NCBI RefSeq assembly: GCF_964204645.1
Contig: NC_134033.1
Span: forward strand, 11,478,655-11,542,654
DNA from: Tubulanus polymorphus
Lineage: Eukaryota; Animalia; Nemertea
Length of the DNA stretch: 64,000 bases
Reading direction: 5' to 3'
The first letter of the stretch is position 1, and every line of letters begins with the position of its first letter. The notes below the pieces were generated by a model, which saw only the letters and a list, made by a program, of their open reading frames with translations, was not told the origin of the DNA and did not search any database. A program made the translations under genes and the position numbers. Shown in pieces: positions 10,470-16,300 of this stretch.

Positions 10470-11350
10470 GGTAAACCTATCCCCATAGTGGGCATTTATC
10501 ACTGCAGCAACGAGCCTCGTTCATTCATTAGTCACCGCTACTTCTGCTAATCGTCAAGTTTTATCACTTACCTCAGCTTTATTGTGCGTCTTGTTAATGC
10601 AATCCACAACAATAGACTGAAGGCAGAAATTAATCCTTTATGTGAACAAAGTGTGGTGAACGGCTTTTTCACATAAGCAGCTTTGAAGATTTTCAGAATA
10701 AATCCAAGTTCTAAATCAGACATTCGTATAATCCTGCTGAATATTTTCACGCACGTAGGGCTTAAAAAGATATATTTAGGAAAAATGATTTCGTTTTCGT
10801 TATTTTTGTGAACCCATTGTTTGTGAGGCGTCATAATATCATATTAAATTCTGATTTTCCTTACGGTAATAGTCATCTACTTGAGGAAAGCGGCAAAATA
10901 TCGAGCCTGAGAGCTGGAGTTTGCGTAACTAGGTAAACTCAAGTAACCGGAATTTTTGTAAATGGGCATTTTCCACCAAAATCAATCTTCTCGGCAAATA
11001 AAGAACTCTAGCGAGTACAGTTCATTCTTCACCATTGGTATATTGGTCTAATGTTGATAAATTCTTCGCTTGATTTCCCTCATTCCTTCTGGCATTTTTA
11101 CCTCTGGCATTAATACGTGAATTTTATTGACGACCACAATTTTGGTTTTTGTGTTACTCAACATATTTATCAATTCAGAATGTGGCTTTGTTATAAGAAT
11201 AAACTGATTGCTGCACTACTGTTACTCCATTCCCCAACATTATTGACTTCAACCCTTAAACAAATGCAAAATGTAACTTTCATGGTGTAGAACTTTGTTG
11301 TAGATTCATGCAGATCAATCTACAGCATTATACCACCCTTAAATACATTC

Positions 11351-12107
11351 GCGGTTTATAGGAAACCTACCAACGCTGAATTCTACCTCCATTACTTCTC
11401 TTTTACTTCTCCGGATATTAAACTCGGTTTAGCTCAAGGATTATTTCTTCGCGCTTTGAGAATTTGCGACCCCTCATTTCTACCCGATGAAATTCACCAT
11501 ATTAACCAATCTCTCAAAAAACTTGCCTACCCCGATTTCCTATTGAAAAAAGCTCTACTTAAAGCTCGTACTACGCATTTTAGAAATAACAACCTTAGAA
11601 CTCCTACGTTGGCTACCGATAAACAGCCTATCATTGTACCGTATGTACCTTTCCTCGAGAATTCTAAAGTTTATCTTCGGTCACTAAATAAACAACTTAT
11701 CTTTAAATACAATAATAAACTTAGTAACATATTGATTAATAACAAACCGAAAACCGAATCCCTAAACTGTGGAATTTATAAAATACCTTGTAAAGTTTGC
11801 GACAAAGTATATATAGGAGAAACAGGTCGGAATCTTAATCAACGCATAAAAGAGCATAAATTAGATGTAAAAAACTTTAAACCTGAAAGCGGAGTTGCTA
11901 GTCATGTTTTTCAGACTTTTACACAATTTTGATTTTGCTAATGCTGAATTAATTTACCCTTGCAGCGATAAAACTAGAAGACATATTTTGGAATCTGCAT
12001 TAATCATTGAAAATTCGAACAACGTTGTAAACCTTAACGATGGTTTTTCACCCCATAATAAACTTATATCAAAATTCCTCTGTAAACTGGTTAAACTCAA
12101 CACTTGA
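11351..12107 (+). pseudogene. PLE ORF remnant: RT thumb/linker + GIY-YIG endonuclease, one +1 frameshift near 11915-11921
   Basis: In frame from 11351: AVYRKPTNAEFYLHYFS...LFLRALRICD...AYP...VPY...CGIYKIPCKVCDKVYIGETGRNLNQRIKEH...SGVASH. After an extra T in CAGACTTTTACAC it continues LHNFDF...RHILESALI...VNLNDG, with stop at 12107. Confidence 0.92.
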
Positions 12108-12410
12108 TTTCCCCTTTGATTATTTGTTATTTGTTCTCTCATCAATTTCGTCTCTGACTTAACTTGTATTCACCTTTGTTTTAATTTAAGTGCCCCCTAG
12201 TTTGTCTTTCTTTTTACTACTGACTTTAAGTTTCATTTATATTTATACTCACTATTGTTGTTTATAATTACCCCCTAGTTTGCTTCCCTTTAATCTATTT
12301 TAGCGTGTAACTGTTTCTACGTTAATTTTCCTTTAGTTTGTATCATCTCTGATTACTTGAATTAGTCTCTTTGTCTCTGGATTGTATATATATCTCATAA
12401 TTTCTGCAGT

Positions 12411-12455
12411 ATCTCACTATTCCTGAAGATGACTATTAGGATATAGTCGAAACGT
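12411..12455 (+). ncRNA. Minimal type I hammerhead ribozyme motif of the PLE, truncated at its cleavage site
   Basis: CTGAAGA (12423-12429), T, stem II GACTAT/ATAGTC (12431-12436/12443-12448, loop TAGGAT), GAAA (12449-12452), CGT; palindromic ACGT in place of stem III. H17 and the 3' strand of stem I are absent. Confidence 0.85.
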
Positions 12456-13270
12456 GGGTGACGTGGTATTTGTGTTTTTTTCCCAGACAGACACTACATC
12501 ATTATACAGTCAGAAGCTTTGTGTAAAAACGATTGTTTCGTATGAAAATGTCATGTAAATGATATCCGAGCTTGCTATGACACAGATGATTTCTCTTGTT
12601 GAATAGTTTTTGTCCTCATTAATCACCATCTTTATGTTAGAGTATAAGCTGTATGCCAGACAGTAGCAGTTGTTCGAAATATGATAGAAAATAGGCACGT
12701 AATACGTGTAAATGTACATCCGATTTTGTGCGCATGATACATATTTTTAACTTTATACTAGATGTCTAGATTCCATGCATTACTTGACAAATCCAGCGAT
12801 ACTGGTAACAAAAGGTGAAGTGCCTCCTGGAGGCAGCGCAGTGCATAGTATCACTATTTCCTTTAAAACAACCGATGAAACCATGTCCTAAAGAAATATA
12901 TAAAGTTTAATGAAATTATCTTAAACGGAAACGGAGATCGTAACGACCCCATACTTTTACTGATGGCAGCACATCAGAAAAAATTTCTTATATAGCAATT
13001 ACCTATGGGACCATACCCCGAACAAGTGTATCGAGTTTCATTAAATCATCTTGAGCGGTTACTGTTAAAAATATATTTCATTGACTCGTCATAAACCATC
13101 ATAGTATGGGTCAGATATTATCAATAACCGATATTTTCATGAACTAATCTGTATTCCAGACTAGACTGAGAAGATCGTTATAGACTGATAATCATCGATT
13201 TCATTATCCTAATATTTTCTCCAATGGGTTCGTTTTTATACGGATTTATCGAATAACTATTTTCTGCGCA

Positions 13271-13327
13271 GCAATGTGTTCCCGTCATGCAATGTGTTCC
13301 CGTCATGCAATGTGTTTCCGTCATGCA
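13271..13327 (+). repeat. 18-bp tandem triplication (GCAATGTGTTCCCGTCAT)x3
   Basis: Single copy in the paralog at ~929-946. Confidence 0.9.
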
Positions 13328-16300
13328 TCCTACACGCGGCATTGATGTAACATCGTGTACGGGAACTCCATTTTGGTGATGTCTTCGACAAATTAGATTC
13401 ATTTTCAATATGATGGATATCGCCGCATTTTGTTATTTCGGGTGGTCATGATTAATTAGTTTTGTTAAAATGTTAGGGCGAAAATATGATTCAAAATCAT
13501 GTTTTCAGCAGAAATATGTGGAAAGTATAATTCTTATATGAATATATGTTAGTATAAAAAAAATTTCATCATTAATTTCATAAAAAAAACCTCGACCGAA
13601 GGCTCCTTGTAATTCTTGAACATGTTCCGCTGGAACTTTTGTTTTCCTCGACGAGGTCTCAAGGTCCACGGACCTCTCGTTGATTCAGTCCCTGGAAAGG
13701 TCGGTTAGAAATGGGTAACCATAAGTCCTAATCCAGTGGAAATATTAGTGACCAAGAATCATAACTTCAAGAATGTCTTAATTCTGACGTTGTTTTTTAT
13801 TTGGTTCATACATGATCAGGCAAATTTATCAATATCATGATGCTGTGCAGCCAATATCCTTTACAAACAACATTTCCCAGCCATGGCTGGGCAACAAGAT
13901 TGGTCTATAGAGAAAAACCAATATGTACCCTTTCGGCTATTGCAATAGCAACTAACTCCTCTTTTTTGAAACCCCACTTCTGAATAAAATAAAAAAAAGA
14001 ACCCGTTTAGGTAATAATGTTGTAGAAAAGGCCTGCATTTAATGATGCTATTATTTTAGGTACTTGTATTATGTAGCAAGTGATAAGGAATTAAGTTGTG
14101 TTTTGTTTTAATGGATATCTCTGAGAAAATACTTTTTAACAAATGCAAAAGTATAGACTAGCCAGTATGGCAGATACAGATATGTTAACGTATATACTGT
14201 ACAATCGAATTTAATTGAGATACACGTATAATTTGAGATAGGAGAAAATAACATTTTAACGGACGATTTAAGAAACGAACAAGGTTCGAGATATGCGCAT
14301 TATATAATTATATCAACAGTATCTATGATCATCTACTTATATATATATATATAAATATACATAGGCCTTATTAGTTATCTCTCTGAGACAAACATTAAAA
14401 GAAAAACATTATATATTATATGGATATTTATGATTATATTTTATCGGATTTTCATCATCGTTTTATAGGAGCTAGTTCCCCTAGCGACAACTACGCCGAA
14501 GAGTTTTGTTGCTAAAACTCCTCACGGTTGCAGCGATATACGGTAATAAAAAATGCCTTTCTAACAAGTGTGGAACTACCTCTTAGGGCCCTCAAATCTT
14601 GCCTCTTGGTCTGCCCCCGACATCACGGCAAATTATGATTCTGGAAATTCATAATCCTTTGTTTCATAAGGATTACAAACGCGTAAATTAGAATAAATTT
14701 CAAAACATTAGTAGGATTATAAACGGGTTATAGGTATATGTTTCACTTAACTCGATACAAGCCATTCGTTTGTATTATATATTATTTATCGATATAACCG
14801 ATATTTTAATAAAATAGTCATCTGTATTCCAGTCTAAACCGAAGAGATTATTTCAGACGGATATCATCGATCATCGATTTTTATTCAAATATCCTAAAAC
14901 GAAATATCAGAAAATGAGCCCTGAACAATTATTCATGATTCTGACAAATCATGATCCTTTGTTTCATAACATTAGGATTATAAACGGATTATGCGTATTT
15001 CAGCACTGTTTGTAATAATGTATCGTTCGTGTCGAGTCGCATTGATAGGAATTGTTCTGTGAAATTTCAGAATTACAAAGGATTTAATTTTTAGCATTTA
15101 TTTGGGGTAAAATCTGTTTCAATCGTTTATCACAGATCTGGAGGCTGATGCTGAGACTGCTGTTATCTTCGTGCTAATGTCACCATATTTGCTGTGCCTG
15201 GAATCAGAATCCTCAATTCATGGGTTCGAACCTCGGTCATCCCTTAATAGATCACACATCTTTGTATCTTAGCCATCTCAGCAGTTCCATCCGGTCCATC
15301 TCGAATCCGATAGATTCGTCGAGAGATGAATGAAAACAAATATATATTTATATATTTAAATATATACATATATAGGAATTGAGGGCACATTTATTTATTT
15401 CAATAATAATCATAGGTATTTAAATTGTACACGCACACACATCAACATCGAATGCTGCATTACAAATGGTCAAATACACACCACTCTTTCAGTAATATTA
15501 ATTAATAATAATAATAATTATAATTATAATCAATAACAGGCGATTACATAATAATATTTATTTACAAATTTGATTTGGAAGTGAATACTCTATCATCATA
15601 TCATTATATTATTTAACTATATGTCTAATTTGAATTAATTGACCTAATAGCAATGTTTTCGCGTGTATAGCTATTTTGAAGTAATCGTTTCTTTTCAATC
15701 ATTGATAAACGCTTGTGGCTACAAAGTAATGGCGAATGTGTCGCAATAATTTGATGAAAAGCGAAATTAATAATACACAATCACTTAAAAATCGGTATAT
15801 AGCGTTTTTAAATAACAGTCTGCGTCCGAGCCGTATTTAGCAACATATTGCCCTAACTGACAATTTTGCATTCTAGGAACGACAATTCCGTTTGCGTGAT
15901 TTAAAAATGTGAAGTAACATAGTTTTTAACTTAAATCATATCTCTTCATGTTCACACCAAAGACCTATAAACTCAGTAACTGAAAATCTGAAATACAGAA
16001 TTGGTTCCTCATTATCATTCGAGTGGCTTCTATAAAATTTTGCAGGTACCAATCTGCTGCTTGGACCCACCTACTGGGCGGTTCAATGTTTTATTACAAG
16101 TTATCAAGGCTTCACATGAACTACGTAGACTAGACATTAGACAATTGATTTCATCAGCAAACCTTTGAAAAGTGATCGCCCAGACCTTCAAACTACGATG
16201 GTGTAAGGGGTGATTTCAAGCTGAAGATTGACAACAGTGCATTAGGACTAATTAATCTGTGTTATGAATCAATCTTCTTACATTGCTTGTAGGTTACTCT

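Follow-up and report, generated by a model that had tools for sequence, protein, structure and literature searches.

A truncated Penelope-like element in one copy of a segmental duplication

The window analyzed here comprises 64,000 nucleotides (64 kb) of contig NC_134033.1 of the nemertean Tubulanus polymorphus; coordinates refer to the window, and all of its features described below lie on the forward strand. It contains a segmental duplication, diverged by about 4%, in which positions 1-~4840 correspond to 11242-~14870. Positions 1-109 match 11242-11350 at 97%, positions 128-427 match 12473-12772 at 99%, and more matching blocks follow. The second duplicate has 1,105 bases between 11350 and 12456 that are absent from the first. 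By comparison with this empty site and with sister copies elsewhere in the genome, they constitute the insert of a 5'-truncated Penelope-like element (PLE; 11351-12455).

The 5' part of the insert (11351-11932) is the C-terminal remnant of the PLE open reading frame, with a GIY-YIG motif at about 11768-11866. The Pfam GIY-YIG model PF01541 matched the region 11351-11929 with E = 3.1e-6 and 27.8 bits, above its cut-off of 22.6. The frame is broken near 11930, and the remaining endonuclease continues in another frame at 11895-12107. It is followed by the family-specific 3' UTR or pseudo-LTR body (12108-12411) and by a truncated hammerhead motif (12423-12455) that forms the very end of the insert. 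A sister copy (L010:477-1400) likewise matched GIY-YIG (E = 6.2e-6) and gave a weak RVT_1 match below the cut-off (E = 0.0086), whereas the window copy is truncated before the reverse transcriptase.

When the 3' UTR and the terminal motif (12100-12455) were used as a query, at least 527 candidate matches were found in the T. polymorphus genome (268 Mb, 77 contigs). The 40 candidates scored gave 43 listed matches, which share 98-100% identity with the query, and many of these lie in head-to-head inverted pairs. The window element thus belongs to a young, high-copy, endonuclease-bearing Penelope-like family. The window copy itself has neither a two-site tail nor inverted arms.

Insertion junctions and the empty site

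The flanks of the insert (11242-11350 plus 12456-13560) were aligned globally with positions 1-1200, where the paralogous target region is empty, giving 95.8% identity over about 1,175 aligned bases. The left flank of the filled site occupies 11242-11350 and the right flank 12456-13560, the latter collinear with window 113-~1200. The sole difference between the filled and the empty copy at the insertion site is the loss of TTT or TT, which confirms the proposal of an earlier note on this DNA that the duplicate preserves the pre-insertion site at 101-120. This site reads AATACATTC (101-109), TTT (110-112) and GGGTGACG (113-120). The insert therefore spans 11351-12454 or 11351-12455, with 2-3 target bases lost, and the terminal T at 12455 can be assigned to either element or target, as was also suspected earlier when this base was described as a possible 1-nt microhomology. 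The 5' junction falls within a 4-nt microhomology, ATTC, which forms the last four bases of the left flank (11347-11350) and is common to the element (AAATTC followed by GCGG) and the target (ACATTC followed by TTTG); such a junction is typical for the joining of 5'-truncated cDNA. Target site duplication, poly(A) and an upstream pseudo-LTR were looked for at 11351-12455 and none was present, so that the insertion had been accurately described in these respects. The window copy is thus a genuine and fairly recent retrotransposition into one copy of the segmental duplication, and its cDNA was 5'-truncated and joined through the 4-nt microhomology with the loss of 2-3 target bases.

Along the window, the start-to-start spacing of the duplicates shifts from 11.2 kb to 12.3 kb and then to about 10.0-10.3 kb, which points to further insertions or deletions between the two copies besides the PLE.

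A minimal hammerhead that lacks its last strand

The element ends with the sequence CTGAAGA-T-GACTAT-TAGGAT-ATAGTC-GAAA-CG-T (12423-12455), in which CTGAAGA (12423-12429), an unpaired U (12430), GAAA (12449-12452) and the terminal C-G-T (12453-12455) can be assigned to a hammerhead fold. Helix II has six base pairs (12431-12436/12443-12448) closed by the loop UAGGAU, and the 5' strand of helix I lies immediately upstream as CTATTC (12417-12422; TTATTC in sister copies). The motif retains the CUGAAGA core and C15.2-G16.2-U16.1 but has neither H17 nor the 3' strand of helix I. In sister copies GAAACGT is followed by T, which is H17, and then by GAAATAA, and helix I is formed by GAA(A)UAA paired with the upstream UUAUUC. 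This bears out the reported absence of the helix I 3' strand from the insert, and it supplies the stem I complement (GAAATAA, pairing with TTATTC) that was to be sought downstream in full copies. Helix I cannot form in the window copy because this strand is absent. The insert ends at U16.1, or at G16.2 if the final T is target-derived, and thus 1-2 nt short of the predicted cleavage site. Of the original proposal that the element ends at its own cleavage site, the stop at U16.1 (or G16.2) stands, while its placement at the cut itself does not, since it precedes the cut by 1-2 nt.

No match to the Rfam hammerhead covariance models was obtained at E ≤ 1-10 in the window, in complete copies or in arrays. 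Such a negative is to be expected where the helix III hairpin is lacking, and the motif was therefore identified by the published features of PLE minimal hammerheads (Cervera & de la Pena 2014, PMC4209133). The published motif lies in a pseudo-LTR and has CUGANGA and GAAA boxes; its long helix II is closed by G10.1-C11.1, a base between A9 and 10.1 stays unpaired, helix I is short, and a palindromic 15.2-16.2 stands in place of a helix III hairpin, hence a presumed dimer. All of these features are present in the family, including the G10.1-C11.1-closed helix II, the unpaired base after A9 and the palindromic 15.2-16.2, so that the earlier assignment to the minimal type I hammerheads of PLEs holds. 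The core C3-U4-G5-A6-N7-G8-A9...G12-A13-A14...A15.1/U16.1-H17 is present in sister copies; the window copy has it without H17. Among 234 instances in the sampled DNA of this genome, H17 is U in 193, C in 35, A in four and G in two. A U follows A9 as the unpaired base in 232 of the 234, the palindrome reads CG in 223, and all six helix II pairs are present in 185. When folded, the hammerhead was the minimum-energy structure both for the copy L014, which carries the GAATAAAC variant, and for the satellite unit described below.

Two positions just 5' of the hammerhead, 12387 and 12416, carry C in the window copy (ctgCag and ctcaCtattc) and T in all 29 sister copies sampled. The T-to-C change at 12416 costs the window copy one helix I pair.

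Normal 3' ends of the family

The element runs on past GAAACGT in each of the 29 other loci. The 36 other 3' ends mapped, which include a few related by segmental duplication, form two classes about 35 nt apart, with 16 at +65 to +70 nt after the cleavage site and 20 at +102 to +104, so that the hammerhead lies 65-104 nt inside the family 3' end. None of the 36 is located at the ribozyme, and the clustering of 3' junctions at GAAACGT(H) that the earlier note had put forward as a check was thus not observed. Such two-site ends correspond to the PLE 'tail', a mark of reverse transcription that starts internally, and like the head-to-head inverted arms they are a feature of canonical endonuclease-bearing (EN+) PLEs. 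Because all 36 sister ends read through the site and stop at two fixed points, the ribozyme is not the maker of the normal 3' end, and its cleavage does not set this end in the window family. Folding of the post-ribozyme region gave a z-score of 0 and was uninformative on a hairpin-directed start.

Hammerhead arrays

The PLE hammerhead has also multiplied in this genome into a tandem satellite, whose 69-nt unit spans from cleavage site to cleavage site. Examples include L081 (1070-2895), L043, L044, L066, L073, L075 and others. Most of these arrays end in the canonical PLE tail and not at the cleavage site. At two loci (L071 and L077) the 69-nt units are situated between the family 3' UTR and its tail, which identifies them as internal amplifications of PLE 3' ends. 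Two of about 13 true array 5' ends start exactly at G1.1 (L059 at about 831 and L075 at about 623); these are suggestive but too weak to use, and the L075 flank is of low complexity.

Search for other ends at the cleavage site

The window copy was flagged for a coincidence in a genome with thousands of PLE-derived copies; recurrence of ends at the cleavage site is therefore the real test of whether its position has a meaning. In a first genome-wide pass, the patterns demanded a non-consensus base directly after a chosen position. After U16.1 there were 68 matches. Thirty of these were cut out: besides the window copy and one case of an internal 21-nt duplication, they are variants with H17 = C or with point changes. 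The other 38 all read GTC (H17 = C), as judged from the pattern match alone. After H17 there were 21 matches, of which 19 continue into the element and two (L068 and L079) break there, and after G1.1 there were 19, as counted from the pattern alone. Overall, most first-pass matches are H17 = C variants, point variants or satellite units, and L068 and L079 are the only breaks besides the window copy among the loci inspected.

At L068, a 69-nt hammerhead array ends exactly after H17 with GAAACGTT, and no tail was found within the next 1.3 kb. At L079, an arm resumes at GAAACGTT after a 93-nt filler, where a GTT microhomology places the break only within -3 to 0. A third case, L060, is a secondary, unselected arm ending in GAAACG, at G16.2.

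Stricter patterns, combining an 18-nt anchor with three non-consensus bases, were then counted genome-wide for positions -5 to +1. The counts were two at -5 (both resembling deletions), seven at -4 (of which at most three may be real breaks), two at -3 (both with the same triplet), two at -2 (both small deletions), one at -1 (the known internal duplication), three at position 0, after H17 (L068 and two uninspected candidates), and one uninspected candidate at +1. There is no clear peak at the cleavage site in these strict counts, with three candidates against 0-3 nearby, all being small counts in which the control matches are uninspected. The complementary product, a copy starting at G1.1, was represented by a single candidate in the genome-wide search for the family. 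The 5' ends near the tail in sampled loci lie at -5, +10 and +24, and none at +1. Unselected non-canonical array ends lie at various points (-2, +11, +23 and within helix II). The chance for one aberrant end to land within 3 nt of the cleavage site is about 0.1-0.3%. Taken together, the search did not demonstrate recurrence at the cleavage site above background.

Origin of the window copy

The reading that we tentatively prefer, at somewhat short of an even chance, is that the window copy is an off-pathway product copied from a ribozyme-cut PLE RNA and primed at or near the cut 3' end. A PLE transcript would be cut by its own hammerhead after U17, leaving an upstream fragment with the ORF, the 3' UTR and the ribozyme that would have lost the normal initiation site. 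This fragment may then serve as a template, with priming at its new 3' end or one base inside. The nicked bottom strand (...CACCCA) could pair through its terminal A with U16.1, which would yield the single T at the junction, and the cDNA would then have been truncated and joined at ATTC. Priming of cDNA on a ribozyme-cut RNA end naturally explains a stop 1-2 nt from the cut. Both junctions are fixed by the empty site, the predicted scissile bond is 1-2 nt away, sister copies show H17 = U together with the helix I complement, and the motif has every published feature of PLE minimal hammerheads. Aberrant ends are rare in the family (0/36), a random end would so rarely fall within 3 nt of the site, and L068 (exactly after H17) and L060 (at G16.2) break at the same place. 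Frangieh et al. 2024 (PMC11167929), working with the lizard PLE PAc, attributed a faint in vitro product to priming off the template RNA 3' end and reported protein-assisted hammerhead cleavage, both of which agree with this reading. It is weakened by the lone verified case in a family of at least 527 candidate copies, by the offset of the junction from the cut, by strict counts of three after H17 against 0-3 at -5 to +1, by the near absence of the complementary product (one candidate at G1.1) and by the imprecise placement of the L079 break. In addition, hammerhead mutants had no effect on insertion in vitro and no RNA-seq reads ended at the hammerhead cleavage site in PAc, the one PLE tested biochemically (PMC11167929).

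Nearly as likely as copying from a cut RNA is an aberrant start independent of ribozyme cleavage that came to lie beside the cleavage site by coincidence. Reverse transcription may have mis-initiated internally on uncut RNA or been primed at the end of a randomly degraded RNA, or a break may have been repaired through microhomology with another PLE copy as template. The absence of a peak in the strict counts, the scatter of the unselected array ends and the 1-2 nt offset all agree with chance, as do the microhomologies at both junctions (4 nt and 1 nt), which resemble those of end-joining or template switching. Among thousands of PLE-derived copies, one such coincidence would be no great surprise, and it was the coincidence that drew attention to the window copy. 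On the other side stand the low probability per aberrant end given above, the rarity of aberrant ends in the family, and the resemblance of several control-position pattern matches, themselves uninspected, to internal deletions. A further alternative is a later deletion of the 67- or 104-nt post-ribozyme extension from a canonical insertion. Small deletions do occur in the hammerhead region, with 2, 3 or 8 nt lost between GAA(A) repeats in some cases; this one would have had to begin within 2 nt of the cleavage site and to end within 3 nt of the old junction of element and target. As the paralogous empty site shows only TT(T) missing, a post-insertion deletion was rejected as very unlikely.

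The broader claim, that the 3' end of the PLE template normally results from hammerhead self-cleavage and is where reverse transcription is primed, is the least probable of the explanations and is considered highly improbable. It can draw on the window copy alone and on the processing of precursors proposed by Cervera & de la Pena 2014 (PMC4209133). Against it are the 36 of 36 other family ends located 65-104 nt past the site in two tight clusters, the canonical tails of most 69-nt arrays, and the internal initiation and hammerhead dispensability seen in vitro for another PLE (PMC11167929). The suggestion of a ribozyme-made template 3' end may thus apply to one verified insertion that stops 1-2 nt from the predicted cut, and fails for the family, whose 36 other mapped ends all lie further downstream. 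The earlier statement that the locus provides 'base-level evidence for what PLE hammerheads do' is not borne out, as the copy is a lone exception to 36 of 36 sister ends. At best it may record ribozyme cutting once, and it does not prove a ribozyme role.

If copying from a cut RNA is correct, the window copy, with its confirmed empty site and its stop at the cut, would give a first genomic indication that a coding PLE transcript is cleaved in vivo. Cleavage would strip the normal initiation site from the coding RNA, so that, if it occurs, it would be off-pathway or serve a purpose other than making the template 3' end. A more general form of the same idea, to which we give a somewhat lower probability, is that hammerhead-cut PLE RNAs are reverse transcribed from the cut 3' end at low frequency and leave rare, nucleotide-resolution genomic records of in vivo cleavage. 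Of such records, the window copy and the empty site preserved for it would be the cleanest, and the L068 array end and the L060 arm would be others. As a single case, it serves as a lead for a genome-wide survey of junctions rather than as a result.

Comparison with known systems

The closest parallel is PAc, the Poseidon element of Anolis carolinensis (PMC11167929), which like the window family is an EN+ PLE with a hammerhead shortly upstream of two adjacent reverse transcription start sites. Frangieh et al. 2024 found that reverse transcription of PAc starts internally, at these two sites downstream of the hammerhead. Its genomic 3' ends occur with or without a 'tail' of 30-40 bp, comparable to the +65 to +70 and +102 to +104 classes, and head-to-head inverted arms are common to both. 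In contrast to the window copy, an insertion that stops at the hammerhead site, no genomic or RNA ends at this site were reported for PAc. Our literature search for PLE insertions ending at the hammerhead site found no report, and Craig et al. 2021 call the function of the PLE hammerhead 'still unclear'.

The element, hammerhead, tail, inverted arms and derived 69-nt hammerhead arrays are all of known kinds. The motif is the same as in the minimal type I hammerheads of metazoan PLEs (PMC4209133), with the difference that the window copy is truncated, lacks helix I and is Rfam-negative. Non-LTR retrozymes and hammerhead satellites (Cervera & de la Pena 2020, PMC7229834; Li et al. 2026 preprint) resemble the 69-nt tandem unit derived from the PLE 3' end, whereas the window feature is a fragment of a coding element and not an array. 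In the EN-minus PLEs, such as Athena and Terminons (Arkhipova & Yushenova 2019, PMC6431247), a 3' hammerhead adjoins reverse-complement telomeric repeats, and for these elements, too, the hammerhead has been proposed to process the RNA template in advance, close to its 3' end. They lack an endonuclease and attach to telomeric overhangs, in contrast to the window family, which has an endonuclease and a normal 3' end downstream of the ribozyme. The HDV-like ribozymes of R2 and other non-LTR retrotransposons, as far as they are covered by the citations in PMC4209133, are also self-cleaving ribozymes that define a retrotransposon RNA end; by comparison, the possible cut in the window copy is at the 3' end and would be off-pathway.

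Rearranged copies at other loci

Two further structures were recorded in the family. One copy (L032/L011; G000:C1:16716531) has a 21-nt tandem duplication, ATTAGGATATAGTCGAAACGT x2, inside the hammerhead and is otherwise canonical. The L079 locus (1337-1647; G000:C12) contains a complex PLE insertion with head-to-head arms, bounded by a 12-bp target duplication, CATGTAATTTGA. In one of the arms, the 93-nt filler lies between +32 and the cleavage site; an Rfam search of the filler found nothing. The interpretation of this arm as a template jump onto a cut RNA end was downgraded, because the filler is an inverted, GTT-joined copy of the nearby flank. Its source lies at L079:1697-1789, 50 nt to the right of the arm, and is 96.8% identical.
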